A stretch of 64,000 bases of DNA from Cyanophora paradoxa CCMP329 (GCA_004431415.1 QPMI01000441.1:35957-99956), one strand, 5' to 3'. Counted from the stretch's first letter, positions 26,626-64,000 are shown. Notes: generated from the sequence alone by a model not told the origin. Made by a program: numbers and translations.

Positions 26626-26649
26626 TCATGAGGCCGTCGGCGGCCGTTC

Positions 26650-30584: not shown

Positions 30585-30729
30585 TACATCATGGGCAGGC
30601 TACAAAATAGCCTACAATGCCGCTACATATCCGGCCGCGGAGAGACTCCGGACTCCCGGACTCCGGAGTCCGGACCGTCTCCGGGACTCCGGATCCGGAC
30701 TCCGGAGTCCGACGGTCCGGAGTAGCCTA

Positions 30730-30970: not shown

Positions 30971-31006
30971 AGTAGCCTAGTAGGGTTACAACTTACAAGT
31001 CACAAC

Positions 31007-32082: not shown

Positions 32083-32257
32083 CCGTAAATTCGGCGTAAA
32101 ACACAATATTAATGCGCTCAATATTAATGCGTTTTTGGACCCGGACCCCAAGTGTGGCTAATAATGCGCCCCCAAATTAATGCGTTTCCACGGCAAAAAA
32201 ACGCATTAAATTGGGGACGCATTAATATTATGCGCGCATTAATATTCTGTTTTACGG
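32083..32257. mobile_element. TA-flanked Tc1/pogo-like MITE (175 bp)
   Basis: TA|CCGTAAA...TTTTACGG|TA. ~38-bp imperfect TIR cgtaaaacacaatattaatgcgc.. / ..gcgcattaatattctgttttacg. Confidence 0.75.
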
Positions 32258-32467: not shown

Positions 32468-32484
32468 CACTGGGAGCCAGAAAT

Positions 32485-32685
32485 TAAGTTTACCATATGG
32501 TAAACTTAGGGTGTGGTAAAGTTGTGCTGTTTGCGTTACACCACTGTAAAGTCACCAGGGTAAAGTCGCCGGGGTAAAGTCAGGGTGGTAAAGTTGTGAA
32601 AAGCGGGGTAAAGACGTCGGTGTAAACTCGCCGAGGTAAAGTTGGCGAGGTAAAGACGTCGGGGTAAACTCGCCGAGGTAATGTT
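32485..32685. repeat. CACTA-type subterminal repeat array
   Basis: 24-bp perfect palindrome taagtttaccatatggtaaactta (32485-32508), and about 12 (g/t)gtaaa(g/c) motifs across the array, mostly at ~14-bp spacing. Confidence 0.85.
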
Positions 32686-32918
32686 GGTTTCGGTGCAGCG
32701 GTTCACTTTTTTACGTTTTTTTTGCTTTTTTTTATTTTTTCTGTAAAAGCTATCTATAGCAGCCCATCTTCAAGCGATACTGCGCGCGAGCTCTATCCTA
32801 GAGCTAGCTAATCGGTTTGATGAATGCTTCGTATTCCTGAAATCTGCAGCTGGGACGGAATTCTTCTTATTTGCGTGCGCATGCGGACTGGCGGGATGCG
32901 CACCAGCCTGGCAGGTCA

Positions 32919-35900
32919 TTAATCAAGCTCATCTCCACCAACCTGGCTGCGGTGCGTAGTCATCTCCTCCTCGTCCGACGACAAGCCGGACTCATCCCCA
33001 TCAGGAATATTTGATGCCACTGCTGCAGCTGATTTCCCTGTGGCAAGTGTGACCAGCAGGTCCAGTGGCTCTGAACGTGATGAAGATCCTTGCTGAAGTG
33101 TCACGTCCATTGCAGTCTCCTCCTGCATCATGATGTTGCAGCAGCGACACAAGGAGAGGAGAGTTAAAGAATGAACGAACCAGGAGACGGACATTAGCGT
33201 CCTTGAAGAAGCGACCGTAATCGGCAGTCGCTCTTTCGAACTCGGGATTCTGAACGCGATGGAGCGAAGAATCGGCTTCAAATCGGCGCGCGATCTCTGC
33301 CTCATCAGCCTCGTTCTGTCGATGCCGAGATTGCTGCTCGGCCTGCTCAGCCTGAAGCTTCTTCATGTCCTCATCATTCGAATTCTGACTGTCTTGGCTG
33401 GCTGCGTTCGACTTTGCTCTCATCTCTTCCTCCTCCAGCTGCCTCTTGTCCTTCCGCTCTTCCTTTTCGGCTTCAAAGGCGTCGCGGTACACCCATTGCT
33501 CAATGACCCAGTCACCAGGCACATGAATCTACGGAATCATGAGTCAAAGTGCTAGCCGTCCAGTATTTTCATATACTTCTTACCACGTCACTGCGACTCT
33601 TTGCCAGCAAATCGTGCAGCTTGTTGCTTGAGCCGAATCCGAGCTTATCAGCGACCAAAGTCGGTGGCGTCGGCGAAACTCCAAGCCAGTATGCCCTGAA
33701 CAAAAGACGTCAAACATGTCGCGGATTTTTGCATTATTGATGCGCAATCACATCATATCCTGATCCGCGACTGTGTCTTTCAGAGGAGTATACACTTCCG
33801 TAGGATGGATACTCTTGAAGATCGTATTCTTGCAAGCATGGCGCGTACCTGCATTGGAAAATCATAAACATAATGCTTGATTGCGAGAAAGACAACAATT
33901 GAATGGCGCACGACCCCCAAACATGAAATGGCCTGGCTTCGTGCGGAATCCGAGGAAAGCGGGAACAAGGAAGCCTTTCTCGGTCTTCTCCCAGTGCGTA
34001 ACGAGAACGCCGCCAGGGGTCCGTTCCTCGAGTTTGTACTCCAGCCGGAGTTCAGTACGAATAGCGTCTTCTGACCAGAAGGGGGCTCGGCCTCGTGCAC
34101 TTTTCCAGATCCAGATCCCGGAGATCCCGGCTGGCGGCGGGCGGCTGAAACGGGGAGTTTGACGAGGACCCGCTGATTCCGCTCCCCATTCGCCTCGTTG
34201 TGCACTTTCTGAGAGTCGAATTCCAACTCGTCTTTGAGCTTGAGAGCAGCTAGCACATCGCGACGGATTCGCTGGTCTTCCGTCTTGCTTCGCTTGGCTT
34301 TCGGAGCCTCCATCTGCGGCATATGCAAGTCAATAAGCGGCATATGCAAGTCAATAAGCAGACATATGCAGCCGGCAAGTTTCACCCACACCGCCAATGT
34401 CGAACTGGAATTCAGCGAATCGTGATCAGCCCCCCCCCCCCCCCCCCCCCCCCCCGAAAGAGAAAATCCCGAAAGAGAACCCTCGAAAACCGCATGACAA
34501 AATAAGAAGTGCAAAACGCTCGCAAAGCAAAAGCGCAAAGCGGCAATTGAGACGCAAGTGAATTCGCAAATGTGACTTGAGCGACTGCGTCCATCTCGAA
34601 CACCTAGCTGCACCGGTCAGGTTGCCGGGTTCCGGACCTGCCCGTGCACGTGTCGACTTCCTCTCTTTGCAGAGGCCCGGGCGTACGCCGTCCATCTCGA
34701 ACACCTAGCTGCACCGGTCAGGTTGCCGGGTTCCGGACCTGCCCGTGCACGTGTCGACTTCCTCTCTTTGCAGAGGCCCGGGCGTACGCCGTCCATCTCG
34801 AACACCTAGCTGCACCGGTCAGGTTGCCGGGTTCCGGACCTGCCTGTGCACGTGTCGACTTCCTCTCTTTGCAGAGGCCCGGGCGTACGCCGTCCATCTC
34901 GAACACCTAGCTGCACCGGTCAGGTTGCCGGGTTCCGGACCTGCCCGTGCACGTGTCGACTTCCTCTTCTCTTTGCAGAGGCCCGGGCGTACGCCGTCCA
35001 TCTCGAACACCTAGCTGCACCGGTCAGGTTGCCGGGTTCCGGACCTGCCTGTGCACGTGTCGACTTCCTCTCTTTGCAGAGGCCCGGGCGTACGCCCTCC
35101 ATCTCGAACACCTAGCTGCACCGGTCAGGTTGCCGGGTTCCGGACCTGCCCGTGCACGTGTCGACTTCCTCTTCTCTTTGCAGAGGCCCGGGCGTACGCC
35201 GTCCATCTCGAACACCTAGCTGCACCGGTCAGGTTGCCGGGTTCCGGACCTGCCTGTGCACGTGTCGACTTCCTCTCTTTGCAGAGGCCCGGGCGTACGC
35301 CCTCCATCTCGAACACCTAGCTGCACCGGTCAGGTTGCCGGGTTCCGGACCTGCCCGTGCACGTGTCGACTTCCTCTCTTTGCAGTCGACTTCCTCTCTC
35401 TGCAGAGGCCCGGGCGTACGCCGTCCATCTCGAACACCTAGCTGCACCGGTCAGGTTGCCGGGTTCCGGACCTGGCTCTGTCAAAATGGCTCTGATGGTG
35501 TTGTTATCTGCAAAAACGCAAGCGCGAGAGCAATGTGCAGGCACGCTTTTGCATGAACATCTAGATAGATGGAAAGAAGGGATGAAGAGCAAAGACAGCG
35601 TGTGAAGAGAAATTGACAGAGGGCACACGTTTTTCACAGAGGCTTCGTCACCATCATCGTCCTGATCCCTATTCATTGGTTCATTAATGACACGCAAATT
35701 ATGAGCAGCATTTATGTAAATATGTCGATTGACACGACCGAAGAAAAATTGCTCACTGATCTCTTCGAGCCCTCCTTCCTCCTCCCCCTCCTTGTTTCCC
35801 CTTGCTGGCCGCGCCAGCATGCTTGTTCCCGGCACCAGCATGCTTGTTCCCGGCACCAGCTGCAGATGCCTTGATCCTCGGCTTTTTGGAGGCGACGGCA

Positions 35901-38900
35901 CTATTTGCTTCGGACTCGAGCTCCTCCTGCATCGGTGGATCGATTCGATTAATGGGATCGATACAATTAAGATATAACGGACGTGATGCATCAGAAGCAG
36001 GCCAGATGTTGGCTCGGATGCACTCGTGTTAGCAGTGCTCTTTTGAAGAAGATTTCCTGCCCAGAAAATCGCTCGTTTCGCTCCGTTCGCCACTTGCATG
36101 TTCGGCTGCACCGGGACCGCAGTCATCAAAGTAGCAACGAAAACCATCTTGGAAAGACTACGTGACTTACAACCTGCGCGGCGTCAATCAGTCCGGTTCC
36201 ACGTGCTGCACACAATCCAAGAATTCTGACTGACCATCTGCACCGCGATCTCTTTTGCGACGCCTTTCTTCATGTAGAAGTATGGAATCTGTTTCTGAAC
36301 CCAAGTTGGACAAACAGATGTCACGACAACCAGATCGTGGGCGCTCTGTACGGCATCGCAAAGGGCCTCGTCACGAGAACACGATTACTGGCGCTCATAA
36401 GGTAGTATTCAACGCATGCACCTCCTCCAATTCAAACAGGTTGGCCCGTACAAGCTGCGGATTGACGAATGATAAATCCACACGGCCGACGTACAACCCT
36501 GTCCCGACTATCTCGGCTGTCGCATTCGGAGCCCCAACGTGCATCAAGTCCACCAGCTCGAACTTGTTGAAGCGCATCAGACTGTTAGGAATCGCTTCCG
36601 GTGCAGCAAGGAACGGATTCACTGCGAAACGAAATCAGGTACGTCAAGATATCGAAAAATGAACAACAAGTACTGAAGTCTCCGGGGCTGATGATTTGCT
36701 TAGAGAACTTATCAACCTCTTTTGCCCGCTCGACTTCTCGTTTCTGCATGCGTTTCATCTTTTTCGGGCCATTATACAAGGTTGCGCCGTTCTGTCGCAA
36801 GAATGAGAAAACCGTGGACAGCACATTTAAGATAATGGCTGGCACACAGCCACAGTAGTCCTCCATTCCGTGGTGCGACTTTGAACAAGATATCTAACGT
36901 GACCCTTTAGCCATTCCGTCACAACCTTTTCCGTGAACGGCTCCTGACGTGGTATGTCGGTGAATGATGATGATGAGGAAAACAAAGATATGAACCGGTG
37001 CTGGATTTCCGTCTGGAACTCCTTCAGGATAAACGCCGTTTGCTGTCATTGTGCAACAGGTGTACTTGAGGGCGAGAAGGATGCGTTGAATCAGCTCTGT
37101 AGCGGACCATCGGAATTTAAAAAAGATATCATATTCCGAAAAAGCGATTCGCACTGCTGTACGATGTTTTCATCTCAAGCCAAATGGGTTGCCCAAGTGC
37201 GTCCCAAATGGCCTGAAGATATACCATAAAATTGATACGAATAAAAGGAGACCGAGCATTGTGAATGAAGACTCGTGGATTCTTTTCGTCGCGCCTTCCG
37301 AGGAAAGAGAAACCTGAGCGTGGTTGGGCGTTTTGCAATGGAAACTGAATGGAAATCTGAACTGAATGGTGAATGCAAATCCGAACCATGCGTGATGGCC
37401 ACGCAATCAACGCCCACAGGAAGCGCAGTGTCGTAGCTGTTTTCTCGGAGCTTCGCGAAGAGTGCAAGAAGAGCTTCACGCTGCCGACACGGATTTCATC
37501 AAAAAAAATGAATCCGGTCATAAGGACATGAAGAAAGCGAACAGCCATCGCGGATGACTGGTGTCTGCGGCTCTGATATTCAACGGTCCCAATCAGAAGC
37601 CGCACTGAAGCCTCCAGCGTTGCCTTGAAGTCTACAGGGACTTGTGGACGGCCGCCGAAGATCGTGTTCGAGACGTCTGATTGTTTTTTGTCATGCGCAC
37701 GTATGTTGGTCATGTTTTGATCATGTGCGTGTGTAATTCGAAAAACGCACCAAAGACTCTCATGATATCGTCGACAAGAGTCTGTACTTGAAGAGGCCAA
37801 AGCTCCTCTGGATCGTTCGCAGGCTGCCTGAGAACCGATGCTGTTTGTGAGAGCGTAAGTTCTTCAACGTGCGATTGCAAACAGCAATCGAGTTCACCCC
37901 ACGCATTGGCGTTACTGCGACCGCCCGAAAGGCGGTGCGCAGCGAGACCCGCGTATGAGTTCTCCTTCTCCGACCCCTCGCGGTCGGATCCATCGTTTTT
38001 GTTCTCATCGTTCTTCTGAAGGATTGCTGTCGTCGATCTGCCGACTGTATTCACGCTCTGATTCTTCAGAATCTGCGCTTCCCATCAGTTTGCGATAGCA
38101 ATACACAACAGCAGGACCACATTTCGAGCAAGGGAAGCAGCGTTCGCCAAAAGCGTCATCGGCTTCCACAAAATCAGAGGCGTAACCGGTGAAGAAGAAA
38201 TTGCAGACACAAAGAAAGACAGCACCTTCAGAGGACCTCCTTTATCAGCAGTCTGAGGGCAAAGCACCGACCAGATTTTCAGGACCGGGCAGCATCGATA
38301 TTCGAATGGTGAAACAACGGGAAATCACCTTCAACGAAGGAACTGCCGCTGGAATATTTTCGCCAGAGACGGTTGCTGCCTGAAAGCAACAGCAACGGCA
38401 AAGGTTTCAGCACTCGGGCATCAGCATTCGAACGCTCGAATTGCTGAAGAACACCGTTTTGAAGCGGCCGCCAGAGAAGTTTCCGGCCTGAACATGTGAG
38501 GAGAGCTCTTAGCATCGGCTGTCAAGTCCATAAAGCGCTGGGATGCATGCACACCGCTGGAACTGGAACGGGTTCTCCGCCTTTGCTTCGGTTTCCACAG
38601 TTCGGGACCTTTCCAATAGCTGCACATGTAGTGTAAGCTGTTATACTAGCGGGGACGAGTAAGACTGCGTACATTCAACGCAAGTATTTCTGGCCAGAGT
38701 GCATCTCCTCGCCGCTTCTTGATTTTCTGCCAGAAGAGCATCAAAATTTGAAGGATCAATATCAACATCGTCTGCCAGCAAGTCACAGGAGCTGTACAGG
38801 GAATCAACCTTTCGCAACACAGCTTCGTATTTGCAAAATGAATGCGCACGTGATTGAGGCCAAGCGTAGATCGATGTCGCGAACCTCCTGAGCAGCAGCA

Positions 38901-39409: not shown

Positions 39410-39677
39410 TGGGGCAGTCAACTCTGCGAACAGCGCTAAGTGACATTCTGTTGCTGTCTCATTGCTGCCTAGGAGCGCATCTCATCGCCTAGGTGCGCAT
39501 CTCATCGCGTCGCTGTACCGGGCTTCGGAAAACTCCGATCGCACTACAGCAAGACTAAGCACACTCAGAAGAGCTCAAGATGCTTACGGATGGTCGAGAT
39601 GCTCCACGCCGATGTTTTCAAACTGCGCCGTGTACCCCCGGGGGGGAAGAACCTGGAGCAGCGGTGCGAACCACGCC

Positions 39678-42600
39678 ATGCAGCGGTCAGAGCGACTGCG
39701 GTGCGAATGTCAGAAGTGTCAAGGCAAGTTAGTGCGTCCTGAGGTTTTCAATGCACATCAACTGCTAGCGCACACCGGATTCAGTAGCAGCGATCGGCAA
39801 GTCGAGTGCCCTTGCTCGCGCTGCAATGGAAAGCGCGTCTCGTCTTGGGTGCAAAGGATACATTTGCACCTAGACAAATATGGATCCAGTCTAGTAGAGC
39901 AAGCTGCCCGGAGAGCTCCTGTAAGCGATTTCGTTCCTTTCGTAGCCGAAGTTCTTGACGTACCGATCCCGACAATTTCGGTTCGAGCGGCACTAAGAAG
40001 ACGACGATTAGCAGCCCCGGCAGCACTTCAAGGCAACGAGCGACAAACAGATTCCAATTCGAAGCGCAAACGTGTCAACAATAAAGCCGCTCGTATGCTG
40101 CGAAGGCTGGGTAGATATACTGATCGTATTGGTCCTCAAGAAAACGGCAATGAACCTGGACATGAATCCAATATCGTCGATGGCATCGATGGCGATGATC
40201 ATGCTCATGAGGCTTTCGACGACCCAGCCGCAGAGGAAGGCCAAGCGGACGACATACGTGCAGACCCAGCTAGGGCGGATCAAGTGGATTATGGCCTAGA
40301 GTCGGATCAGGACGCAGCGCTCGACGGCTCAGATGATGAATGCACTACCAACAGGCAGAATTTTTATTCTGAGCCTCTTTTTGAGGGCTGTAAAGTGTCG
40401 GTGCGTGCTGGAGCATTCAATACATTGCTTGATATTGGCTGTATTGGCTTTTTAACTGTTCTCTAGCGCATGGATTACATCACTTTTTGCCTCGCATTGA
40501 AGAAACGCTTTACACAAGCACCTGTTGAGATGTTTGCATCAATCAACGCGGCTGTGTCTCTCATCATTGAGGGCCAACAAACTGCAACGAGGCAGCTCGG
40601 GTCTTGGAAGAGAATGATTAGAGAAATCCAAGAATTCGTAGCGGTAAATAATCAACCACTTTCAATTTTCGTGTTCGAAACGTTAACATTTCCCTGCTCA
40701 GCCTTCCATCACTTTCAGGACATGTGGGTATAAAGAGACAAAGCACAAGGTGGCGATTTGCAAGACAGTCTGGATCGAAGACGGAACTGTTCCTCCAAAT
40801 ACAGTCTGCGAGTGTGGCCATTCAACCTATGCCGATGGTGTGGTGGGCTTCTTTTTTGATCCGACCCGGAGTTTTCAGCAGCTACTGAACAGTCCTTCGT
40901 ATTATCCCCGGTTCCAGTGCGTTGATTTCGATTCTGTCGGTGCGGCCACGGCTGATCAAATTTACACAACGGCGTCCAGTTACGGCGTTCGAGCAATACA
41001 GATTGGGGGCGATCGTGTTCCAGATTACTATTTGCGGTCGCAAGAATCCGAAACCCAACATCTCACTGGCGACTTTGTTCAATCAAGACTTTTCTCTTCT
41101 CTTCACGAGGAGGGCTGTGTGCGAATTTCGGACGGTCTTGGAGTTGTGTGCGCATACTCTACAGATTCCGCAGTGACGCACAGCTGGTCATTTCCACACC
41201 TACAGCTTATTCTGAAAACTGGACTCTAATGTCGTGTTTCTAGGTCCCACGGCGGCTCTTTCACCCCTGTGTTTGTGATACCTATGTCTGCGCATCCTAA
41301 TTGGCGGTGCGTGATCATTATCTCGCTTTCCGCTTTTTCGCCACTTGTCTCACCCCGTTTCGCTCAGAACAGCAATGCAACGCCTTGTTTTTCTCATGGA
41401 TGGGAAGCCGAGAAACTTCGATGGAATGTTCCGCGTATTCCTTACACCGTGGCTTGTTGCCAACCAGCCGCCGCCCCCAGGAGTCCCCGCTCCCGAAAGC
41501 CAAGGGTTTGCATGCCTTATAATCTGTCTCTTTCTTTCAATCATTCAATACCGTTGAGCAGAGTGGGGTTTTGCAATCCTCTCACCGGCAAAACTGACAA
41601 AGCATATTTCACAATGGCTCTCAATATCGATGACCTCCCCGGATGCGCAACGGCATTTATGATAAGTTCGCGTAACGCATCCTTGCGCGGCTTTGTATTC
41701 CGGGACAGAAACCTAAACTTTCTGCAGCGTCGCACAGTGGCGAGCACGGCCATCCGCTTCGGAAGGTGGATTTCTGGAAAGCGCAGAGCAAAACCGCCGG
41801 GAAAAACATGTTTCAAGCACACGATCTCCCGCTCAAACACTGGATGCGGGAGTTGTGCGTACTGACCAAGGATCATGATAGACCCCCATCTGCCCGAACG
41901 GACTACTGCATGGTGCATCGAGCCGACGGACTGAAACGTTCCCACTGCAGCTGTTCTGACACCCTTCGGTACAGCGAGCCGACGGACATGCTGTAGAGAT
42001 CCAACGCCAAAGATGGTTTCGGAAAGAGATTACGCAAACAGCTTTTGTTCAATTTGTGAAAACGAAAACCTTCGGTAAACCTTTTAGAATGGATATAAGT
42101 GAACATCCTTCGAACGCGCCGTCCATTGAATTGTCTCTGACCAGGCGTTCAAGGCTTGCCGACTTTAGCGGAATGGCCACACTTTCGGCTCGGCCCCCTA
42201 TGCGACTTCAGCGAGAGCGACTGGGAGTTCCTGCGGCATGGCGAGCTGAATTTCGACATGGGTGTTGACCGTTCAGGGGCGCGGCATACTGACGAATTCC
42301 ACCTCGTCAAAAACCGTCTGGCGGATGTCTTCAACTATCTTCGCGGCAACGCGAATAATGGTGATAAGCTCAGTCCTACCTCGATTCAGTGTGTCGTTGC
42401 ATCTTCCAACTTCCATTCGTGGTTGATTTGCAACGTACAACCACTAACTTAATTACTTTCGTCAATGCGAAGGTTAAGCATCAACATGGATGTTCTTGTC
42501 CTTTACAGGGCGCCAAGCGAAGCGGAAATACGCTGCGCAGAGCAAAAGATGGAAAAGGATCGGCGACTTTACGAAGCAGCTCTCCGAAATGGCAAGCCTC

Positions 42601-44662: not shown

Positions 44663-44741
44663 CCTACAGCTGCATGCGCAAGACGTCATTTATGCAAATA
44701 ATTAGCTTGTAACAAATTTATTATTTCTTGTGGCCTGCGGC

Positions 44742-45422
44742 ATGCAGCCGCAGAGCCTCGGAGGCCCGGGCCTTTCGGATCCGGTCCTGGTGATAAAGCA
44801 CACAATCATGATTCTTCTGATCATGAGCCCTTCGAGCTCGTGATCATGAAGCCTCAGGCCTCGGTACCAGGGCGACTCGGCGAGCTCGACGCATGGCCAG
44901 TCATGATCAAAAAGCTCGTGTCTCGTAGCAAGCAACCCTCCGGGCCCAGCCTAGAAGACACACGGCGCTGATGATGGGAGCTCGAGCCTCGAGAAAGCCT
45001 CAGGCCTCCTTTGAGGCCCAGGGGACATGCGCTGGTCATAGACTCTAGATCTGAGAGCCTCGGAGCTCGAGCTTGTGATCATGTGCATCGGATCATGACG
45101 CCGCTGAGCCTCACTGGGCTCAGGCCTCGGCAGCTCCCTTTGAGGCTCCGGATCCCTGATCATGACTTAATGCAGCCGCAGAGCCTCGGAGGCCCGGGCC
45201 TTTCGGATCCGGTCCTGGTGATAAAGCACACAATCATGATTCTTCTGATCATGAGCCCATCGAGCTCGTGATCATGAAGCCTCAGGCCTCGGTACCAGGG
45301 CGACTCGGCGAGCTCGACGCATGGCCAGTCATGATCAAAAAGCTCGTGTCTCGTAGCAAGCAACCCTCCGGGCCCAGCCTAGAAGACACACGGCGCTGAT
45401 GATGGGAGCTCGAGCCTCGAGA
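44742..45422. repeat. 253-bp direct repeat pair (44742-44994, 45170-45422), 428-bp period
   Basis: Copies identical except one t/a mismatch seen by eye. Lies between the convergent stops at 44662 and 45649. Rich in tcatga/gagctc/aggcct palindromes. Confidence 0.95.
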
Positions 45423-45648
45423 TCCGCATGATGGGCCGGAGCCACTAGGACGATTAATATTTAATTATGCCTCTGTCCCCTCATGATCAGCGAGGACGGC
45501 TTATGCACATGATGATCATGACGTGCGTGCATGCGCGTGCACGTGTGAATGCCTGCAGGCGCAGTTGCTTCCTCATCAATTCAAATCTATTACTTCCTAA
45601 TTCCTCAAAAAGCTACTCTCCTAATTCCTAATAAAGCTACATTCTCCC

Positions 45649-51327: not shown

Positions 51328-51387
51328 GGTACTTCTTTAGCTTTTCCCCGGGAACCGCGATACCGCGAACTGCAAAGAAGTGCGGGG

Positions 51388-54238
51388 ATGATTGCTGACG
51401 TTTTCGCGGTGCCGCAGAGCCCCTGCCCCCAGATATGCGGCGACTGGATACGACGGTATGTAAACGCCACAGAAACGACGTGCCAAACAGATCTAGACTG
51501 CCATACGCAGAACCCACATGCTGCCCTTCTTGAATTACAGGCATCGAAGTCGACTATGGCAGCCTTGTCGGCAGCGTCAGCCGCCATCAATGCTACGCTT
51601 AGGTAACAGGCGCAGCAGAGCTCGAGCAAGTGCAGTTTGGCGTTCTTACTCGTTCTTACTCGCAGAGCAATCATCGCAACGGACCCCGTGAACTTCGCTG
51701 ACCCAAACAAGCAAGTGTGCCTTCTTCTGATAGGCCTAGTTCAGCTTCACGGTCGTCCTCTAGCCTTGCGTGCTTTCCGGTGCGAATGCGCGGCGTTGCC
51801 TTCATCGCTGCCTGCCGGCTCTGTGTCTGAAGCTGTCGATCTTTCTGATCTGGCAGGGCGTGTGCCGACCTGCCAGACGGAGAAGTCGAGAGGCTCGAAT
51901 CTGATTTACGTGTACATGCATATGATTGCAATTCGCACATGCACGTCCCAGATGGCGCTGGATCATTCAGTGTGGATCAAATCGAAAGAGCGCACGTATT
52001 CAACTGGTCTCTTCTTTTCAGTCAGATCTTCGCGTTTCTTCGCCAAGGCCGGATGGCTCTGGATTCACAATGGAGTCGGTTCATCGAAGCACGAGATAGC
52101 GATTGTGCTGGGGCTTGGGGATCTTCGTCATTGTCAGTGCTCTCGCAAGTTGAAGATGTGTCTCCGTCCGAAATGTAAGTAGTAGTGTTATGCTTGGAGT
52201 GAAATGATTGATTCTTTTTCAGGTTTATCTTCCGTGCTCTTTCGGATCCTATGGGGATAGGGTCGTCTTCTATGGTGCATGATAACTGGCCATCTTCAGA
52301 ATTGCAAGAATCTCGCGATGTACCTTTCTCTATCGGTCTGTCACATTACAATGTAGTTCAATCTGTAGCATACAATCATGTTTGGCGCACAGTGGACATC
52401 AATTCTCACCGGAAGGACATCGATGATAAACTGAGTCAGCTCTGCGACGGTTTCAAGTTTGTGACGCTCTCGCATGCGGGGAGCGCGTCTGATCTGGAGT
52501 CAGTCGTCAATGAGATAGCGTGCCTGGTACGCAGTCAATTCTCTTGTGCAATTGTGGATCCGTTTCTTCTGATTTCGTCACCAGCTTGCACGCACTGCAA
52601 AGCTAAAATGCCCTTTGGGGGCGTATGTGTGGACTAAAGGCTGCTGGGGAACGTCAAGGGCGCTCTCGGGCCGAATGTTCGAAATCGAAGGCGGTCGCCA
52701 GCACCAGCAAATGCCATCAATGGACGGTAGACTGTGTTAACCTTTATTTTGTCCGTCGACTTCAACTCTTGACCGATCAGGGAAACCCACCTTGTTATCC
52801 CGTGTGTGTACGATAAACTTCCTCCCGACCAGCAAATGCCCGGAAACAATCAAGCACACTTCGCCATTTCTCAAATTCGGAAGGTATTCATTAACATGTG
52901 CGCCTGATTCCGCTGAAGTGGTCCCGACCTTCGACTTAGATAATAGAAGAACGCCGAACGAGCGCGAAATCCATCACTGTACAGGAGCTTGAGAGCTCGC
53001 ATCCCTTTGCAAAGCTTCCTATCAAGGTCAGTTGGAATCACGGTCCGAGCAGCATTCTGGTTCTGTTTGGAACCGAATCTTTTAGGTTATCATCATGGAG
53101 GCAGTTCAAATGGATTCTTTTGACGGAATCCGGTTCATTTCGAAGGAATTTCTTATCGAGTTATCGAAGCTTAGCAAGGAATTCGGAATCGCACTGTTGG
53201 TCGACGAATCAATAACAGGTGAGCAGCTGTACATGTGTGCGCGCATAACAGGGAGAGTGACAATGTCCGCACTTCACGCGCAGCCATGTGTCGTACAGCG
53301 AAGTCTTTCTTCGCATTTGAACAGTTTGTGAGCACTGTGCAGAACTCGAATACGAAGGACGAGATTCTTGTGCACGGCGTGCTTACGGGGAAAACGATGC
53401 TTCCGTCGTGTATTCTCGTGCGCGCTCAGCATTGTTCGCTCTCGCCGAGGGCATTGAGAGCATCAGGCGTGATGCAGGTAAAAGAAATGCCTGGTGGAGT
53501 AGATCCATGGAAGCGGACGTTCAACATTCCAGCGGAAGAATTTGCAAATGATGTTTTTGCCGGTACGATTTCACACTTGTAGTTTTCTGAGAAACACTTT
53601 CATTGCCTCTCTGCAGAGTATATAACTGTGCAGCCGTATCGTGACGCTTTGATCAGGACATCTTGTGTTTTGGATAAAAGTTCGTGTTTGTGTCCTAATC
53701 GTTACCACCTCTCATGCATATCCTCTAGTTTGCAAAATGCGCACTCGATGTCCAGACTTCTTCCAAAGCCTTGCAGCTCTGTCGACCAAAATTTTCCATC
53801 TCTTTGAGGACTTCGAATTTGGCCTGCGAGCTTCGCTTTGGAGGCGACGGAAATCTTCTATCCGTCCGGCCGCTTGGCTAGCAGCTCGGGAAGTCTCCCG
53901 CTACTCGGATTGCGATCTATCCTACAGTACATCCGTAAATGACATCAAATACGAGGCGGGGCAAGCAGTTTCGCATGCCGGTACGATTATAGTGTATTGC
54001 TTTTCATAATTTTCTGCGAAAGCGCATTTGTTTGCTTTTCATTAATTTTTGCGCCTGTGCAGGATTCCTGTTCGCAGTGCCGACTGTTGTCGCAGACAAT
54101 TTGCCCCAGTTCATTTACACGCGCATTGCCCAATGCGAAGTAGCATCTTATCATCGGTACATTTTTCCAATCGATTGCAATTTCCAGAGGCTGGTGCAGC
54201 GATTTGCACGTGCCAAGCGTACAAAACTATCGCTTTAG
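51388..54238 (+). CDS. Divergent class III PLP-dependent aminotransferase-like protein with an N-terminal extension, multi-exon
   Basis: IGLSHYNVVQSV (LGHxHPxVV-like), HAGSASDLESVVNEIACL|LAR (SGSEAxE..LAR-like), GCWGTSRALS, VIIMEAVQ..EFLIELSKLSKEFGIALLVDESIT|AMCRTAKSFFAFE..VLTGKTM (PLP Asp and Lys), RYIFPI. One junction near 52730-52950 is unresolved and the start is uncertain. Confidence 0.68.
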
Positions 54239-54369
54239 ATGGTAAAGTCTATTTTTTAAGAAGAACGAGCGCGCTTGGGCTTGACCGCACTTGGGCTTGC
54301 AACAGGGTCCTCGAATGCCCTACGGCGAAACCAGCGCGCGCTGTCAATGCATCGTCTGTCAAGAGTAAG

Positions 54370-57300
54370 CTAATCTTCGAACCGTACGCGTGGAGTGTGT
54401 CGTGATTCCGAACATACACAGCCAACAAGATCCGATCTCATCAATGACTCCAGGCCCCAGCGAGCGGCTCTCTCGCAAGGCTTAGCGATGCTGCTCTCGA
54501 AATCGTCCCAAGTAATGCGAAAATCGTACATGGCCTGCGAATGGGTGTGTGGGATGTTAGTTAAAAGATGGGGATCGAACAAAGATCGGGCAACATTACC
54601 CGAACAAGCATATTGTGATTGTTCATATACGCCTCGGCGGCGGGCATCCATTGTGTATCCTCGATTATTTGCATAGTTTTCTCCCACTGAAGATAGCGAA
54701 GCACTGTGAGTATAATGGCGCGCGCGGGTGCCCATGGCCAGCAAAATTGCGCACATCGTGCACAATGCCTGCCACGTTGAGGCAGCTTCCTAGAGAGCCC
54801 TCCCTTGTCTTCCGCATCAGGTAATCCATGGCATCGACACCGGGCGCCACCTCGGGATACGAGGAGTAATACGGCGCTAGTGTGTGTGCAGCTTGCTTCA
54901 GAAGTACCTCGGCCATTAGACGGTTTCGGTACAAATGCTGAACGAGATTCTGAGTAAATTAACAGGCCAGGCTCTGATATTGATCATCTTTGTCTTACCT
55001 TCAACATGCATTGGTCCTGCTTCGGAAGGCGGTTGCAAGAGCGAGCTTCAGTGTACGGATGACGTACATATTCCTGAATCGTGTGCACAGAAGGCACAGG
55101 ATCAAGCATCCAACTCTTGAGAATTCCGGTGTCATGATGAGGAAATAGTGTTCTGAAAGTGTCACCGAGGCGTTTGTGGTGACGATTGAATATGTGTCGA
55201 TACGGATGCCCTGGGGCAACAATTGGCTCGAGGCGCATGTTTCCACGGAAACCGCCAACTTGGTAAGGAACCCAGCCATCACGCGCATGCGACGCGTACG
55301 AGCCTTTCCAGGTCTTTGCGTCGAGGAAGCAGTCAAGACTATTTTTGAGTTTGTGTGCACGGACGCCGACAGCAGGAGCTGGGACGGGCAAGGTCGCCGG
55401 ATAGTCTTGTGAAAAGAACGAAACTTGATGCCGGGCGTGTTCTTCCAAGTTGCCTTCGTCCGGCCAAACGCCAGAACCGACAGCAAGAGTGCGCTGATAA
55501 GGACTCTTGAAAGGGGGGAAAACCTTGCACGCCTTGCAAGGGAGTCTGATTTCGTTATATTCCATAAAGATTGTTCGACAGTCCTGTCCGCGAGAAATCC
55601 AGCTGGCGCAATCCGCAGGGGTCATCGTTGGGAACAACTTCCCGAACATGCTTCGTGTTGACCGGTCTTGAATACGTGTTTGGAATCGGGAATTCGCAAC
55701 TATGTCTTTCGAGTGCGCAGAAGAAGGTGAAAACGTTGAGCCGTCACCAAATGCAGGGGAATCCGGATTGAGAAGAATTACGTCATCATCAGCTTGTTTC
55801 TTTGGAGGAGTCGAGCACCTGGAATTCGGGTCCAAATTACCGGCAGTGATCGACAATTCACGATGCTCAAGCTCACCCTTTGCCCGCGTTCTCGGACAGT
55901 AACGGCACTTCGCCAGTTGCCTCAGTCGAAAGATTTGCAACGACGTCGAAATCGGGGTTTGAGTATACATCGTCATCGCTCAAAAGAGCAGCAGAAGCTC
56001 TTGCCCTGGGCAAATCATTTCCAATTCTGCACACACGATAGCCTGAGCGAGCGTTGATAGCAACAGAAACAAAAATCCACACCCGGTGCCATCGCTGTCG
56101 ACTGTCAGCGTGACAGCGGCGGGCAAGGCCGGTCTGGTGACTTCAGACATCGTATCGGCCAGCGACATTACCTCGCTATCAACGTCATTGCCAGTTGATG
56201 CCTGTTGCGGACGAAACGGGAATAGCTGCAAAGCTTTGGCGACACTCTCCTTGAGCATTCTGAAGGCCATTGCTGACGAAAGGCCTACGTATACCGGGCT
56301 GAAGAGGTGTTGGGCTGACTTCAATGTGGCGGGAAGAGTGGCGCATACTGATCGATACCCCCCGCAAGCAGTTGGACCCCCCCCCCCCCCCGCCCTCCCC
56401 CCCTCTTTGCGAGTTTTTCGACGCGTACAAGAACAACCCGAAGATGAAGCAGGCCTAAGCCGACGTCTTCATGTGGTGCGTGCAGCAGGCCAAGAAAGTT
56501 ACAGTTATTTCGCATCAGATGCACTCGCATGCACATATTCCAAAGCTATTTCGTCCATATCGCGGTCGTTGTAGTCATACAAACTTCTTCTCCTTCGTTG
56601 ATGTCGCGCAATGCGAAGAATGCGATGCCAAGTTCGCCGTTTGCTGGACTCGAGACGTTCGTGGATACCACTCTGCGTTGTCATGATTAGTCAGCACCCG
56701 AACACAACAGGCTTAGTGAAGCAAACGAACAAAGGAATAAGATTTGCCGATCCCTTCGGACCGTGATTAATTATTCTAGCAAGACCATTCCCTGTTGTCG
56801 CATCGAGGCTGCGTACGGTTCGAAACTGCGCCTCTCAAGAGACCAAAAGCATAAGAAACGCACGCAAAGTGGCGAGAACCGATTGTAAATTCGTAAAGAT
56901 AATAGTGGCCGCCACGTTGCTGCAGTTTCTTTCGTAATGTGTTTATGCTTGCAAGACCACGAACGAGGTGGCCTCGATAGACAGAAATGAGCTTCACGCA
57001 GCAGTGAGTAGAGCGTTTTTTTTGTATAAATCTCTGAGCAAGAAGAATGCGCAACTGTTCCAATTACGATACGCTTGGCTGCAATTGCACCCATTCCCTT
57101 TGGAGGTCCGAAATTGCAAGGGCGCAACAAATCTGATTCGTATCGGGAGAGTGCCTCCTCTCCAGCTGCGATGAGGTTTCGGGCAGCTTGGAGCATCTCT
57201 CTACTGATGGTGAGGACGACCGAGTTGACGAGTGTTGGAATCGAACGAGAATTGCGTGTTCGGGAAGCCTCCTCTTCGAGGAGTTTGCGGTATTTGCTTG

Positions 57301-60300
57301 CGAGTCGAGGTGGAAGATCCGGTGGCCGCCAGAATGTCAAATCTGCCTGAGCGTTCCGTGCGATAAAAAGCTTAACTTGTACCGATGCATTAAGGTGCCG
57401 ATGATACAAAATGACATGAAGACGTGCAAGAGCGTCTTTAGCGGTCTTCGTATTCCCCAGCTGTGCTCGGCTGTTGTGCATGTAGAAGGAGACGAAGCGA
57501 TCGGGATTCTTTTCCAAAAACGCAGTAAAATACTCAACACACGATACGTTCAGCGTCTGCAAAATATGAACGGTCAGCCATTATATGTATAGGTAAATGA
57601 CTTCATTTCGGAAAGAACCTCGTCATTCTCTCCGGCATTGAATCCAATGCAACTAGGCATTGATTCAATGAGATCGACGAGTTTCTTGAAAGCTGAAATG
57701 GAGATTTTCCAGCCATGTGCTAGAATAACTTTTGTCACATCGTTGCCCTTGAATGCTTCGTATAAATCGACGACCTTCACGAGCGCAAGTTTCAGAAGAA
57801 CGCGGCATCTTCATCTGCATGCCTACCTCTGTGTCTTGTACGGGATGAGATTTATTGACGAGTTTCAGGATTTCAGGGAACTTTCTTGACTCTCGTGCAT
57901 CGGTTATCATTTGTGAAAGCTCTTTGTTCAGTCGAGTGTTTCGCACGGGACGACATCGGGTGTCTGCTTGTTGTAATTAGAATACGCAAGTAACATGCAC
58001 TAGAAGCTTCTAGGTCTAACTATAATCAGCGGGCTTCGGCGGGATCACTGATCTACTTTGCTGCTAGCCTTTGCCCCTTTTGTTTTGCCGCTAGCGCTGC
58101 GGCGTCGGCCGCGGCCTCTGCCGCGGCCTCTGCCGCGGCCTCTGCCGCGGCCTCTGCCGCGGCCTCTGCCGGTTGATTCTTCGCTGGACAATTCGGTCGC
58201 AGCATCACGAGCCAGCTCACGCTTCTCTGAGACCGAAGCATGCTCGCCGCCCTCCTCGCCTTGCTCGCCGCCCTCCTCGCCTTGCTCGCCGCCCTCCTCG
58301 CCTTGCTCGCCGCCCTCCTCGCCTTGCTCGCCGCCCTCCTCGCCTTGCTCGCCGCCCTCCACGCCCTCCAGCATTGGACCTTTAAAAAAAGGTAATGTTT
58401 TCAAGCCCGATAAAGATGCGAATGCGAATATGAACGCCCACCTTTCTTATCGGCTTTTTCCGTTCTCCTCCTCTTGAGCTCCCTATCATCTTCATCTGCG
58501 GGAATAGCATCGTTCAGTTGTAGCGCCGCGATTAGCGGAGCTAAATAAGAAGATGAACCGGCAGAATCCGGAGCTGCCGTGATAGTGAGCATTTGACTAT
58601 CAGGTCCGTTCAAATTTTGGCAGGGCAAGGACCTGATTTGGAAATCGAGCTCGGGCCGGCCACGGGGGCAGGAACCTGCGAAGACTTCTTGACCCATTCG
58701 TCCAGTTCCTTCCGGTCGAAAAAACGTCTTTTGAATGTGTCTGGTCCTGATGAGCGAAAAATCTGGTTAAAGCCTCCGAATTGGAGTTCAGCGAAGAGCT
58801 CACCAAGAGCTTGAAGTTGATCCTCGAAGTATTTGGGTTCGAGGAAATAAGCAGGGCGGTCTTCCGAGCTGAACTTCGCATCTTGCTTCGGAAGGAGATC
58901 ATCAGCTTCTTTGAGCTCGTCGAGAGTCCAGAAGCCCACTGCAATAAAAGAATCATATAATTGTTAGCAAAAGTTTGGAAACCTCTAGAGAATTGCATGT
59001 TATCAAGCAAACGAACCGTGAAACGAAGGCTTGATTGCGTTCAACGAGTCCACAACCTCGCGTTCTGCACGAGAGAGCTTTCCGCCAAGCATGCTCTTGC
59101 GGACGAGTGGATGGTATCCGACCGCGCCGAATATCACATCAATGTTTGGCTGGTCTGGAACACCGAATTGGGTTTCTGGTTCGTCGTCTTCTTCCGCATC
59201 CTCGCGACCGATGGCAAGCTGCGGCACGAGCACTCGTGTGATGCGGCCGAACAAGGCGCTTGATATTGCCCATCTGCGCGTGCGTTATTTTAGATTGTCG
59301 AAGTGATTGAAGGCATGCGTAATGGCGCACTTGCCGAAGGCATGAAGAATCTCTGTAGCGAGAGGCCCATCAAAGAATCGATTTTCTTTGAACATGTTCA
59401 TCTGCACGATTTCACCGGATTGCATGAACTTTGTAGAGCTGTAGGTCCATGGCCAGTCAAGAAAAACAAAGCCTGGCAAGGACGCAAATGTGCGTACACC
59501 ATCCTTATGCACAGGCGATACATAAGCCGAGCCTTCGACATCTTCTCGCCACGCTTCGCGTGGCGGGTGTGGATAACCGTAATCTGCGTCTCGGCATTTT
59601 CATCCCTGTAGCGGTGTCACCGGACGCAACAGGACATGTTAAGTAGAGAAGGCGCACAGCGCGTTGTGGACAACAAGGGCCTGCGGACACGTCTGGAAAA
59701 TTTCTTTGGCAAGGCCCATGCAATGCTCACACTCCTCGAACGAAACCATGTGTTCTTTGTGCTTGTGTTTGGAAATCTGCTTGATCTTCGTGTTCGCCTC
59801 TCGCATATCATAAGCGGCGAAGCCATAGTACATGGCGTTGTAGTCCTCTTCCGTTACCTGGTCGTCCACCCCGAGGCCCTCTGCTTTCTCTGTAGCCGGG
59901 CGCGAATCGTAGGACATAAAGAAAGCAGGCTGGAGATTCATTAAGAATAAATAAAGAAGTCTTCAAGCCTACCAAGAATGCAAAACGCACCAAGCCTTTC
60001 AAAGACGAAATAATTTCATTCTTCTCTTTCATGTTGTAAAACTTGAGCATCTGCTTCTTGTGGATGTCCTTCACCTCGTCGCTCGACAACTCCGGTCCAG
60101 AAACTGAAGCGATGGAGGTTACAAGGAATCCCAAACACAAAACAGGACTCACAACAAAAAAGTGTTGTTCCTGGCACAGAAGCCTTCAGCGCCTTCATCA
60201 CAGGCCGAACCTTCGTGTTGGTCTGGGTGAACCACAAGTCAGATCACAGGCCGTAAAGCATGAAGGATATAAAGATTGAGACCTCGTACACAGGTGCCAA

Positions 60301-61807
60301 AGAAACGCCGATTACTGATGAAGCGGTGAACCCGTGTTTCTCAGTGGACACGGCGCACATCGCGTCGACAATATGATCAGGTTCAGCAGCGTTCTGACGG
60401 AGCACACCGAGTGGCTCCGAAGTGAACCCCTTCAAAATATGCTCTCCATTGGAACGCGTTGCAAGATGTCCTCTAGAAGAGCATGGAAAACCTGTTGGCA
60501 CATACGAGATCTCAAGGGACGGATTCTGAGAAAGACAAACATGAAGAAACGCACAGAGCCATTCCTCGCCTGGAGAAAATCCACTGTAGGACCCGCGGAT
60601 CGAGGCAATTTGTAAAGCTTGCGAAATTCCGAGTCAGACTTCGCCGGTGGTCCACAGTTCTGGTTCGGCTGTTTCCTGTGTCAAGACAGGGTGAGCAGTA
60701 CGTCGACTTGCACCTGCCACGATGAATAAGTAGCGAATACGATCGCTTAAACTGCAGAAGCGCTTAACTTCTGCTTACCACTTATTGCCACAGCTGACAA
60801 CTCGCTGACCTTCGGGCACCAAGAGCCCACACGCCGAACAAACGGCGTTCTCCGCAATGTTTTCAATGAAACTCGAAATCGGTTGTGCAGCCGAGACAGC
60901 AACAGCATCCGGGGCTGTGAATCGAGGTTTGAAACGGAATTCTTTTAACTATCTCTGACAAACGTGCACCTGCAATTTCACGACGTCCGTACTTCTCAAA
61001 ATGTGTTTCATACTCTTGCAGTTCCTCTTCATCCCATGGTTCTGGCTTCTTGGCTGAGAAACAGTCAGAAATGCAAATCCCACATTGCCACTGCAAAACT
61101 GTCACGGAAAACGCACGTTCGAAGGGAGCTTTCCCGGCTCTTGAGGGTGTGGGCGAGGAAGATGGCGAGCGATGGGGCGTAGAAGAGCCGCCGGGCACGG
61201 GCGAGGTGGAGCCGGCCCCCGCCGCCAGTGGCGCCTTCTCCTTCTCCTTCTTTGCCCTTTTCTCCCTCGCCATCGCAACCAAACGCTTCGAACACGTCAA
61301 AAGCTCGTGCGTCGATTTACGAAGCTGAGCCAGCGCCTCCCTGCATTTGCTGATTTCCGCATCGGTGGTAGCGACTTCGAGACGCTGTTTCAAGTCTACG
61401 ATGCTCGAAAAAGAGTGTGAGAAACGAGCCATTAAAAAATCGCCTTGCAACTCCCGAAAGAGTTGGTCTGCTTCTTGATTCATCCGATTTGCCTCGGGTT
61501 GGGCTGGTCCTGCCGCTGGTGCTTGGCTGGTGGTTGGTCTCCGCCAGGTTTGTCGAAATCCGCTTGCGGCGCAGATGGGATACGGAGGCACTCGCATCAG
61601 CGCTAGCTGCACCCCGGATGCTCCGGCCGCGGGTCCCTCCAACGGTAATATTCCAGCAGAAAGGTTTTCGGCTCCACCTGAAGACAAATCAGCCAAGACC
61701 AGCGCGATCCAAGACGATCCACTAGTGTGGCCGGGTACTGTCTGAAAGTTGGGCTGTTTCTGCGAGAGAATTGACATCCTGTTGTATTTCGGGATCATGA
61801 TCAGCAT
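54370..61807 (-). CDS. Large multi-exon protein (possibly two genes): coiled coil, PHD-like Zn finger, possible GNAT, acidic/RG repeats, RNI-like region, PR-Set7/SET8-like SET with a 1-nt frameshift, unknown C-terminus
   Basis: CSAC..CGNK|WC..YC..C ... EEWLC|FPC. YYGFAAY..QITVIHTRHAKRG. (EEGGEQG)n and (RG)n repeats. LYEAFKGN..IGFNAGEN. SET: KGMGAIAAK..LISVYRGHLV..YYLYEF..FA|LDATTGNGLARIINHG..IAFFALRDINEGEEV / LYDYNDR. Confidence 0.62.
58108..58360 (-). repeat. Coding tandem repeats: 12-bp unit x5 (RGRG) and 21-bp unit x~5.5 (EEGGEQG)
   Basis: gccgcggcctct repeats at 58108-58170 and ttgctcgccgccctcctcgcc repeats at ~58240-58360, in frame in ORF 58045-58404. Confidence 0.9.
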
Positions 61808-64000
61808 AGTAGTCGGGCAGAAAATGGAATGAATCTCCTAATTCGGTTATCTACTTGAAGTTCGTTAGGAACAGAGGTGCCAAGGCCTGACGGCGAAAGA
61901 GCCGCGTCCGCAGTTGGTTCGCACCCGCGATTGCAATTGCTTGGGATCCTCGCCCGCGGCCGGATCCGGATCCATAGCAGCCGCGCGCGCCAACCGGGCT
62001 GCCGTGCCGCAACAAGTTCAGATTCTGTAGCTTGTCGTACTCGAAATGGAACGCGCCGTCAAAGTTCCAACCGGCGCGACCGTGCACGTTGAGAAGCGAG
62101 TTCAAAGCCACCCGAAGATGAACTGCGCCAGAAGACAAAGCGTTTCATGCTCAGGTTATCCGAAAACATCACGCATAGGCGGAATACTCCGGGATCCGCA
62201 CCAATCAAGAAGATTAGCTATTCGATTGACCACACTGATTGAACAAGTAGATGTAAAGCCGCCCGAATGACACACTGAGCAAGTTGCGGCCCGGTTGCAA
62301 GTTGCGGCCGGTTGCCTTTTGGGGGTACCCGCACGCAGCCCGGGGCGACGGCCGGCGGCGTGCCGGTACGGTGCGGACTCTACGCTGTGCGGACTCTATA
62401 CTAGTTGGACCTTGCAGGCAACAGGAGAGCTAGTTGCAGTGCGGCAAACATGCATATGCAGGCCGCCTCCCAAGCTAGTTACATCGCAGCTATAGCTAGC
62501 AGAGAAGTTTTTCGGCTACCGTCCATGTGACTAAGCGGTACACGAGGAGCAGCATCCGGATTCCTCAGCCACCTTCAACGACCATTTGCAGTTCGCGGCG
62601 TAGAGCGGCCAGAAGCACCCGGGCGCTTCGAAGAAGGAAGAGGGCCGCTAGCTACCTTGCAGTGCTCCCCGCCGCGACGATGCTCTCGCCAGCCGTACGT
62701 CGGCGACAAAAACCAATATGCATGCAAAAACGAGGTGCGCTGAGAAACCTACACTAGCTGCGGCTCAGAACGAACTCAACGATCTCTTTAAATCACATGC
62801 GCTAACGTTGCGCTTGTCTGCGGCACCCCTCGAGCAGGTTTGGGTCACATCGCCAGAACCGTGCACTCGCAGCCACCGACAGCGATCTGCCTACGTATAC
62901 GTATACGTGCGCACCGATCAGCAAAGCCAGAAACAAGCGGTCGTCGAGCGCACCAGGATAACAAGGCGCCGACGTGCCATAGCGGTCATTCTGTCCATTC
63001 CGGCGACGCTGTTTAGTCAGCTTATGTCGACACTGAAGTGGTTTTATACCGTAAAAGCGCACCGAGACCTGCCGCGGGCGCCGTGGTGGTGAGCTGGCTG
63101 CAGGTCTTTCTCTTACCTGATCTGGTGGTGCAAAGTTAGGGGCGCGAAGCGCAGTGCCTGGGCCGGGAGGCAGCACGAATAGTTTATATCTAACATTGAG
63201 AAAGCGAAGTACGCACGTCTGGGCGGCGGGGCTCAGTTTCCCGGGCGGCGGTCCGGCCCGCTGCGCGGCGGCGAGGCCGGGCGCGCCACCCGCTGCGCGG
63301 CGGCGGGTCAGGTCTTGCACGGGATAGTGCACATGCATACCAAAGTGGTGGCGTACCGTTAGAGGCACCTGGCGTCCGAGAAGAGCGAGGTGCGACGGAA
63401 ACGCGATGGGGGAAAACTGATCTGGGAACGCGCGACCGCTTCCTGTGAGCGGAACAATCTATCATTCAACATTCATTCAGCTCGGACCCGCGGCCGGATC
63501 CCTCGAGGACTCAGTCAGGGCCAGCTCGTTGCAAGAGGCGAAAACGAGGACGAAACGCCAGAGGCAGCTTGCAAGTTGCAAGGCGGTCTTGCAAGGCGGT
63601 CTTGCGCATGCAAGGCGGTCTTGTAAGCCGGCCTAGCGCTTTGGCTATAGCTAGGTTTTGACCCCGCTTGCACTGTACCCCAGCTGTTTTTTGGGGGCCA
63701 AATGGCCGGGCCGCTTGTTGACCATGCCGGCGCCAGCGCTAGCTGTAGCGGGCCTGCGCCACGATCCGCATTGGCTGATGGCCGCGTGCGATCTTTATCA
63801 GACTTCCCTGAAGACCTCTTGATCAAGCTCACAACAGAAGTCGGCATCGTCGACGCCTTAGGAAATGGCTCGATGAAGCTAAGCCGGTTCATGAAGCAAA
63901 TCGTTGAAAAGCAAGCTTGGCCGGAGCTCCAGCTTACGTCGTGCTCTGCGTTCGGGCATGGACGATATGTGCAAGATGCCGTCTGGGCTCAAGTCTTGGA

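Follow-up and report, generated by a model that had tools for sequence, protein, structure and literature searches.

Giant EnSpm/Plavaka DNA transposons of 17-19 kb with three accessory genes (PAG1-3) have been described from the red algae Bostrychia moritziana and Chondrus crispus; in one accessory gene an N6-adenine methylase and a SET domain are fused, and the elements have been proposed to modify their own chromatin (bioRxiv 10.1101/2025.02.11.637652). SET histone methyltransferases are also attributed to HarbingerS and to Phytophthora MuDR families (Kojima and Jurka 2014, as cited in PMC12730594), TET/JBP dioxygenases are carried by fungal KDZ/Plavaka transposons (PMC12730594), and VANC of the VANDAL elements is the proven case of anti-silencing (PMC5735166). 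Here we analyze a 64,000-nucleotide stretch of the glaucophyte Cyanophora paradoxa CCMP329 (GCA_004431415.1, QPMI01000441.1:35957-99956; hereafter the window, numbered from its first nucleotide). We read positions 32468-64000 as belonging to one copy of a giant autonomous CACTA/EnSpm (CMC) DNA transposon and as forming its left part, which measures at least 31.5 kb. In this reading, to which we give a probability of about 0.65, the element has recently multiplied to ~15-25 near-identical copies, and a chromatin mechanism is proposed for it. Taken simply as a transposon with SET cargo, the locus earns slightly more confidence.

Plant CACTA/En-Spm elements encode TnpD and TnpA, have CACTA/CACTG ends and subterminal repeats, generate 3-bp duplications and often carry captured gene fragments, including those of Ulp1-like protease genes. 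The Cyanophora element resembles them in its CACTG end, its direct and inverted short subterminal repeats and the N-terminal Transpos_assoc match in a large gene, but it is far larger, its cargo looks like whole intron-bearing genes, and Pfam sweeps of 32.4-64 kb found no match to Transposase_21/DUF4218 or Transposase_24.

With the red-algal Plavaka elements it would share the character of a very large CACTA-superfamily DNA transposon of an archaeplastid alga, with a DDE-type transposase gene, several accessory genes, one of which joins a methyltransferase-like module to a SET domain, internal tandem repeat arrays, and a proposed action on its own chromatin. Unlike those elements, it measures at least 31.5 kb rather than 17-19 kb; its methyltransferase-like module is not an N6/N4 DNA methylase, as no PF01555 match was obtained in the same sweeps; no ParB or 2-oxoglutarate (2OG) oxygenase like that of PAG3 was matched there either; and its SET domain has ASH1/NSD/SET2-type AWS and post-SET flanks and is accompanied by extra SET-like and aminotransferase-like genes. 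No PF01555 methylase has been reported from the C. paradoxa proteome (PMC12344493). The PAG cassette combines PF01555 with SET and ParB with a 2OG oxygenase, whereas the Cyanophora SET domain has another partner module.

The HarbingerS, Phytophthora MuDR, fungal KDZ/Plavaka and VANDAL elements embody the concept proposed here, that of a DNA transposon encoding a factor that acts on epigenetic marks; however, they belong to other superfamilies, carry only one accessory gene and have an ordinary size, and among the systems compared only VANC has experimental proof of anti-silencing. The novelty claimed in an earlier note on this sequence was overstated, since SET genes are already on record as cargo of giant EnSpm/Plavaka elements and of other DNA transposons. 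What is new is the larger element, the glaucophyte host, an ASH1/NSD/SET2-type SET domain with a different partner module, and the further cargo; in size and gene number it clearly surpasses the examples from red-algal Plavaka elements and from oomycetes, and a third archaeplastid lineage is added. No literature linking Cyanophora with CACTA elements was found.

Left end, extent and copy number

The region at 32468 has the anatomy of a CACTA/En-Spm end. It shows both the 5'-CACT(A/G) terminus and the short subterminal repeat arrays of the CACTA/EnSpm (CMC) group: CACTGGGAGCCAG begins with CACTG at 32468, TTA lies directly 5' of it as a possible 3-bp target-site duplication, and the G[GT]TAAA[GC] motifs, presumed to be binding sites for a transposon protein, fall within 32499-32669 with a spacing of mostly 14 bp (Table 1). 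The word GGTAAAGT occurs five times within 130 bp of this array, against an expectation of 0.99 for the whole window; the window holds six copies in all, a count that no shuffle reached. Both the CACTG terminus and the subterminal repeats claimed in the earlier note are thus borne out. An inverted copy of CACTGGGAGCCAG (13 nt, at most three mismatches) was sought throughout the window without success, and an inverted cluster of the subterminal motif is likewise absent from it. If 32468 is a transposon end, the element therefore continues rightwards past 64000 and is at least 31.5 kb long. A right terminal inverted repeat before ~45 kb, which according to the earlier note would speak against a giant element, was looked for and not found, nor was any right end up to 64 kb. 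Scans of metagenome and viral sequences with the proteins and with the 24-nt terminus, and an Rfam search of the window, gave no match.

The number of copies was approached through short-read Logan contigs from two DNA sequencing runs of different studies (X1, 2024; X5, 2019) and two putative RNA runs, all compared over 43500-49499; contig extents beyond these limits were reckoned from record offsets. In both DNA runs the contigs showed zero differences from the window over the compared interval, and the accessory gene described below was matched exactly over 45393-49499. A 2181-nt contig covering the 3' part of the transposase-like gene (~42591-44771) had a word depth of 1385 in X1 and 341 in X5, and a contig of ~10,976 nt running from 45393 to ~56368, which by its reckoned extent would take in the SET fusion gene along with the aminotransferase-like gene and a 331-residue open reading frame (ORF), had depths of 1480 and 341. 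Between them lie two perfect 253-bp direct repeats, whose own contigs were roughly twice as deep (2952 and 646); the spacer contig that bridges the repeats, present in both runs, was about as deep as the flanks (1303 and 248). The transposase-like gene and the accessory block are thus directly linked at the same copy number, and the equal depth and zero differences in two runs show that the cargo and the 3' part of the transposase-like gene belong to a single unit that has multiplied recently.

Unrelated contigs overlapping the interval by 18-22 nt had depths of 63-92 in X1 and 10-20 in X5, so that the transposase and cargo contigs stand at ~15-30 times the depth of the few other contigs listed. 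The other outcome that the earlier note had named as telling against it, cargo consisting of single-copy host genes, was checked in this way and did not hold: the cargo is not single-copy host DNA, since it was found at this high depth, equal to that of the 3' part of the transposase-like gene. No contigs of 88-99% identity were found for 43500-49499, which suggests that the copies are almost identical and the burst recent; some 20 near-identical copies would mean very recent activity. The 2019 genome paper reported little repeat expansion (PMC6704402). Contigs break at repeats and, as we infer, also at a poly-C tract. Low-depth contigs diverge at the 253-bp repeats and join them to other sequence, indicating that this repeat unit also occurs elsewhere.

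The element has 52% GC, against 66.5% in the 19-28.5 kb segment of the same window, and 67.6% is reported for the C. paradoxa genome (PMC6704402); beside the GC-rich host segment its composition looks foreign. The element shows no depletion of CpG (observed/expected 1.08) that would betray long-term methylation. Short poly-C tracts lie inside it at 34430-34455 and 56378-56402.

Predicted coding content

As the region is intron-rich, all stop-to-stop pieces were translated and each was searched singly, exon by exon. The Pfam sweep took in ~370 pieces of 32.4-64 kb, out of ~400 pieces in total, for which ~0.01 false matches are expected at E 3e-5. It returned Transpos_assoc, SET, a second SET-like piece, Aminotran_3 and one probably spurious DUF4919, and nothing else; a single domain, SET at 45797-46048(-), passed Pfam's own threshold. 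Exhaustive pairing of GT and AG sites between exons was too ambiguous for a unique gene model, and a minimum-intron path was used as the statistic, with only GT-AG introns of 45-90 nt allowed and the sense strand compared with the antisense strand. In both long genes a few short introns sufficed, in keeping with a reported mean intron length of only 86 bp in Cyanophora paradoxa (PMC6704402). Homologue searches with a 340-residue transposase-like ORF, the 331-residue ORF and the AWS/SET-N exon returned zero matches, a weak negative, as their length window excludes long spliced proteins. An endogenous virus was considered and rejected: no virus structural-protein family appeared in the Pfam sweeps, and a lone viral-polymerase-domain line (E 0.048) was noise.

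The long accessory gene opposite the transposase-like gene carries the element's clearest domain. Its SET domain matches Pfam at E 4.3e-9, and the solved structures closest to this SET exon in a PDB search were ASH1L (E 2e-6), followed by NSD3, NSD1, NSD2 and SETD2; a PDB search with the AWS/SET-N exon gave no relevant match. AWS-like and CxCx2Cx4C post-SET cysteine patterns were seen by eye on its flanks; the AWS Pfam profile gave no match despite the former, and the latter is reached through a 61-nt GTACGT...CAG intron (45805-45745). The catalytic NHSC and Y motifs have been preserved, as have the post-SET cysteines. These features argue for a SET domain of the ASH1/NSD/SET2 type (H3K36 class), and the SET2/ASH1-like AWS-SET assignment of the earlier note was right.

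From 49986 to the post-SET frame, this gene can be read with nine GT-AG introns on the sense strand, against 24 on the antisense strand. Many of the nine are 58-64 nt long, their donors are GTGAGC, GTACGT or GTGCGT, and a single in-frame stop, at 48800, lies inside a predicted intron. In 5'-to-3' order the gene begins with an orphan region at the N-terminus, followed by the class-I methyltransferase-like part, the C48-like motifs and the AWS-SET-postSET part. Because the gene is readable with so few short introns, the methyltransferase-like, C48-like and SET parts can lie in one predicted protein of ~1,200 residues.

The methyltransferase-like and C48-like parts of this protein are weakly shown, as are the second SET-like gene and the class-III aminotransferase-like gene treated below. 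The exon called DOT1-like in the earlier note has a generic class-I motif I, and its neighbors in the ESM atlas were DOT1 and other class-I methyltransferase clusters at scores of only 0.88-0.90; on the other side, it gave no Pfam match, the DOT1 profile (PF08123) included, even at an E threshold of 10, no PDB match, and no relative in an exhaustive phmmer search of 1.84 billion representatives, and its single-sequence AlphaFold2 model was unusable (predicted local distance difference test score, pLDDT, 35). The exon is a weakly supported class-I methyltransferase candidate, at 0.90 in the atlas, and its DOT1 identity is tentative. At 47.3-46.99 kb, motifs with H, D, Q and C that were read by eye fit C48 proteases in order and spacing once a predicted 59-nt intron is removed; Peptidase_C48 gave no Pfam match even at E 10, so that the Ulp1 assignment is left to motifs and finds no profile behind it. 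At 46700-46760(-), between the C48-like and AWS regions and outside either SET domain, LMARFINHD resembles the SET signature RFINHSC.

Transpos_assoc is an N-terminal zinc domain typical of CACTA TnpD transposases. In the transposase-like gene its match lies in the 340-residue ORF at 39444-40463(+), with E 3e-5 and 24.5 bits, under the Pfam cut-off of 27.7, and consists of two tandem C-x-C-x2-C...H zinc motifs at ~39783-39884. DDE-like motifs (RISDGLG, NIDDLPG, CGSC and HTDEFHLVKN) were recognized by eye only. The gene can be read end to end with 12 GT-AG introns, against 26 on the antisense strand, and its single in-frame stop, at 41227, lies inside a predicted intron. An ESM atlas search with a piece of it returned uninformative neighbors. 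The TnpD assignment of the earlier note thus keeps its sub-threshold zinc domain and its motifs and lacks a Transposase_21 profile. The TnpA-like gene claimed there was probably the group of orphan pieces beside the terminus, at which neither Transposase_24 nor any other profile matched among the ~370 pieces. In the transposase-like gene, DEFHLVKN (42141-42449(+)), when aligned by eye to the CACTA motif D-x-M-H-I-E-K-N, has V at the expected catalytic E. The 101-bp tandem array near the left end, inside the element, has open frames on both strands.

Farther downstream, Aminotran_3 matches at 53086-53328(+) over profile positions 194-235 (E 1.5e-3, 17.7 bits, cut-off 30.5). The region of the pyridoxal phosphate (PLP) lysine was seen by eye only, and a path with six short introns exists through the gene, so that the PLP aminotransferase of the earlier note is retained as one Aminotran_3-like exon below the cut-off. 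The second SET-like gene shows the motif series KGMGAIA, GNGLARIINHG, FFALRDINEGEEV and then LYDYNDRD, and its 44-residue piece at 56549-56680(-) matches Pfam SET at E 1.3e-3, under the cut-off. PDB searches with four pieces of it gave no relevant match. What had been called a PR-Set7/SET8-like SET is therefore a sub-threshold candidate with its LYDY motif out of frame. Among the minus-strand pieces beyond it, 58099-58365(-) contains coding-like 12-nt and 21-nt tandem repeats that yield an RG-rich run and six GEQGEEG heptads in an ORF.

The PHD-like and possible GNAT domains of the earlier note found no profile match in the sweep of ~370 pieces, and a scan for cysteine patterns revealed no PHD-type signature beyond 48.8 kb. 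As only one lysine methyltransferase is solid, the second SET being sub-threshold and frameshifted and DOT1 unsupported, the toolkit of three kinds of lysine methyltransferase plus Ulp1, PHD and GNAT is an over-read.

Table 1. Positions of the left terminus, repeats and candidate genes of the Cyanophora element within the window
Feature	Position	Strand	Basis or remarks
Left terminus CACTGGGAGCCAG	32468..32480	+	Read from sequence; sole exact copy in window
Perfect 22-nt palindrome AAGTTTACCATATGGTAAACTT	32486..32507	.	Two inverted GGTAAAC subterminal motifs; direct reading
Subterminal repeat array	32499..32690	+	Nine G[GT]TAAA[GC] motifs; only such cluster in window, either strand
Orphan ORF pieces by the terminus	32922..34616	-	Acidic coiled-coil-like 175-residue piece and 278-residue piece; no Pfam family
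Tandem array, 101-bp unit	34588..35474	.	7.8-8.8 copies, 96-97% matches
Further orphan ORF pieces	35320..38084	-	No Pfam family; last ones head-to-head with transposase-like gene
TnpD-like multi-exon transposase-like gene	39444..44659	+	Pfam Transpos_assoc, frames, short-intron path
Two perfect 253-bp direct repeats	44742-44994, 45170-45422	.	Between convergent transposase-like and SET genes
Long multi-exon accessory gene	45650..49986	-	Frames, short-intron path; stop codon after ...CKCPECRRPNCKRPNRIYV
AWS-like cysteine pattern, SET N part, SET C part (NHSC, LTWKY), post-SET CKCPECRRPNC	45652..46529	-	Pfam SET, PDB, direct reading
Ulp1/C48-like motifs AHVLLSF...VFYDSLG..., then AQDAFTLS/CGVHAGDF	46468..47321	-	By eye, across predicted 59-nt intron
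Class-I S-adenosylmethionine-methyltransferase-like exon ('DOT1-like')	48125..48799	-	Motif I VIADIGAGSGG, then GFEI; ESM atlas
Class-III (PLP) aminotransferase-like multi-exon gene	52212..54402	+	Exon 53086-53328 with ...LLVDESITG; Pfam, frames
Orphan 331-residue ORF	54987..55979	-	Longest after 340-residue transposase-like ORF; no homologue found
Second SET-like gene	56508..57580	-	KGMGAIA..., GNGLARIINHG, GELGIAFFALRDINEGEEV, then LYDYNDRD out of frame
Further minus-strand ORF pieces	58048..63988	-	Putative members; include low-complexity GEQGEEG/RGRG-repeat piece and 324-residue orphan ORF 60866-61837

Alternative readings and a proposed mechanism

Several observations weigh against a giant, recently active transposon. 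The reading is built on the left end of the sequence, and the right end, the target-site duplication and an empty site lie outside the data. The depth data span ~42.6-56.4 kb, and the link from the terminus to the multi-copy block is inferred. The unit would be present ~15-30 times if the unrelated contigs represent single-copy DNA; contig depth is not itself a copy number, and this baseline is assumed. No profile of a DDE transposase core, Transposase_21 included, was matched in the Pfam sweeps of 32.4-64 kb, and the exons searched in large sequence databases (methyltransferase-like, AWS/SET-N, transposase-N and the 331-residue ORF) had no detectable homologues. The second SET-like gene has a 1-nt frameshift in a T run at ~56581-56584, just before LYDY; it could be an assembly error, because the Logan contig, as reckoned, ends before this gene. 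One putative RNA run yielded a single unspliced 242-nt contig of depth 2.3 within the transposase-like gene, and the other had no contig over 43500-49499. Finally, C. paradoxa repeats, DNA transposons among them, are reported to be heavily CpG-methylated (PMC12344493), which speaks for silencing rather than escape.

The gap between the terminus and the depth data leaves room for two adjacent things, the CACTG end of a shorter or degenerate CACTA element and, as a separate repeat of another family or a nested insertion, the block of transposase and cargo. Depth and junction data starting at ~42.6 kb rather than 32.4 kb, the abundance of transposon-like sequence in the area (the MITE-like unit at 31005-31696 and repeat clusters at 30.3-32.3 kb) and the divergence of low-depth contigs at the 253-bp repeats all agree with such an arrangement. 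We nevertheless consider it quite unlikely: the window holds no inverted terminus within three mismatches and no inverted motif cluster to close a shorter element, no other long terminal inverted repeat pair brackets the block, and the sole transposase-like gene, with its CACTA-typical domain, lies 7 kb inside the terminus. That the block instead consists of host genes which merely adjoin a transposon end, either as a cluster or as chromatin genes amplified segmentally or in tandem, appears highly improbable. The host-like short introns and a SET domain of ordinary eukaryotic type would suit host genes, but a depth ~15-30 times that of other contigs and matching the transposase-like gene, without a single difference over 6 kb, would not; nor would a GC content of 52%, when the GC-rich segment of the window has 66.5% and 67.6% is reported for the host, or the absence of homologues for every exon searched, unlike conserved host chromatin enzymes.

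A different objection accepts the transposon and holds that the accessory genes are decaying, functionless passengers, the toolkit being in part an over-reading of short motifs. In its favor, one domain alone exceeds the Pfam threshold, the second SET carries a frameshift, each long gene is broken by one in-frame stop if the predicted introns are not real, and there is almost no RNA. Against this, only the sense strand offers long open paths that need few short introns, and neither the NHSC and Y motifs nor the post-SET cysteines have been lost. Copies so similar have, in either case, had scant time for decay. Decaying cargo is in our judgment unlikely.

If the giant element is real and its cargo active, it would be a cut-and-paste transposon carrying writers of chromatin marks and perhaps an eraser. 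The transposase and a partner protein would bind the GGTAAAG repeats, cut at the CACTG ends and move the whole unit, while the SET protein expressed from the element would deposit an H3K36-type mark on the element's own chromatin. The H3K36-type mark antagonizes Polycomb H3K27 methylation, and in this way silencing would be put off for long enough to permit a transposition burst. This chromatin step is a conjecture that we regard as doubtful, and anti-silencing as its outcome is a hypothesis that should be taken as somewhat more doubtful still; for the anti-silencing proposed in the earlier note there is no evidence, the two putative RNA runs having given just one unspliced contig. It is rather improbable that the whole set, namely a ~1,200-residue protein joining DOT1-like, SUMO-protease-like and H3K36-type SET parts, the second SET and the aminotransferase-like protein, forms a trithorax-like system that blocks Polycomb and 5-methylcytosine silencing of the element's own copies and so explains the recent burst to ~20 identical copies. 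The published methylome makes Cyanophora paradoxa a practical system in which to ask whether a transposon-encoded H3K36-type methyltransferase can counter Polycomb or DNA-methylation silencing. Standard annotation would, moreover, mistake the genes of the element for chromatin enzymes of the host.

Sequences to the left of the element

The surroundings of the giant element seem to be rich in transposons. Just left of the CACTG end, ACGCATTAA(T) motifs occur four times at 32200-32250. At 31005-31696 lies a 692-bp unit resembling a miniature inverted-repeat transposable element (MITE), with perfect 26-nt inverted repeats (ACCAGTGCTGTCATCATGATGCACAC) at its ends and internal direct repeats ATCATGATG...TTAACGCATCATGATGAC, and at 30375-30588 are 38-nt inverted repeats with GAATTGCCG direct repeats. 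Farther left, the segment at 19000-28500 is far richer in GC (66-74%) than the remaining window and contains a run of ~33 C and an opposing G-rich tract 1.3 kb apart (25511-25555 and 26845-26916).

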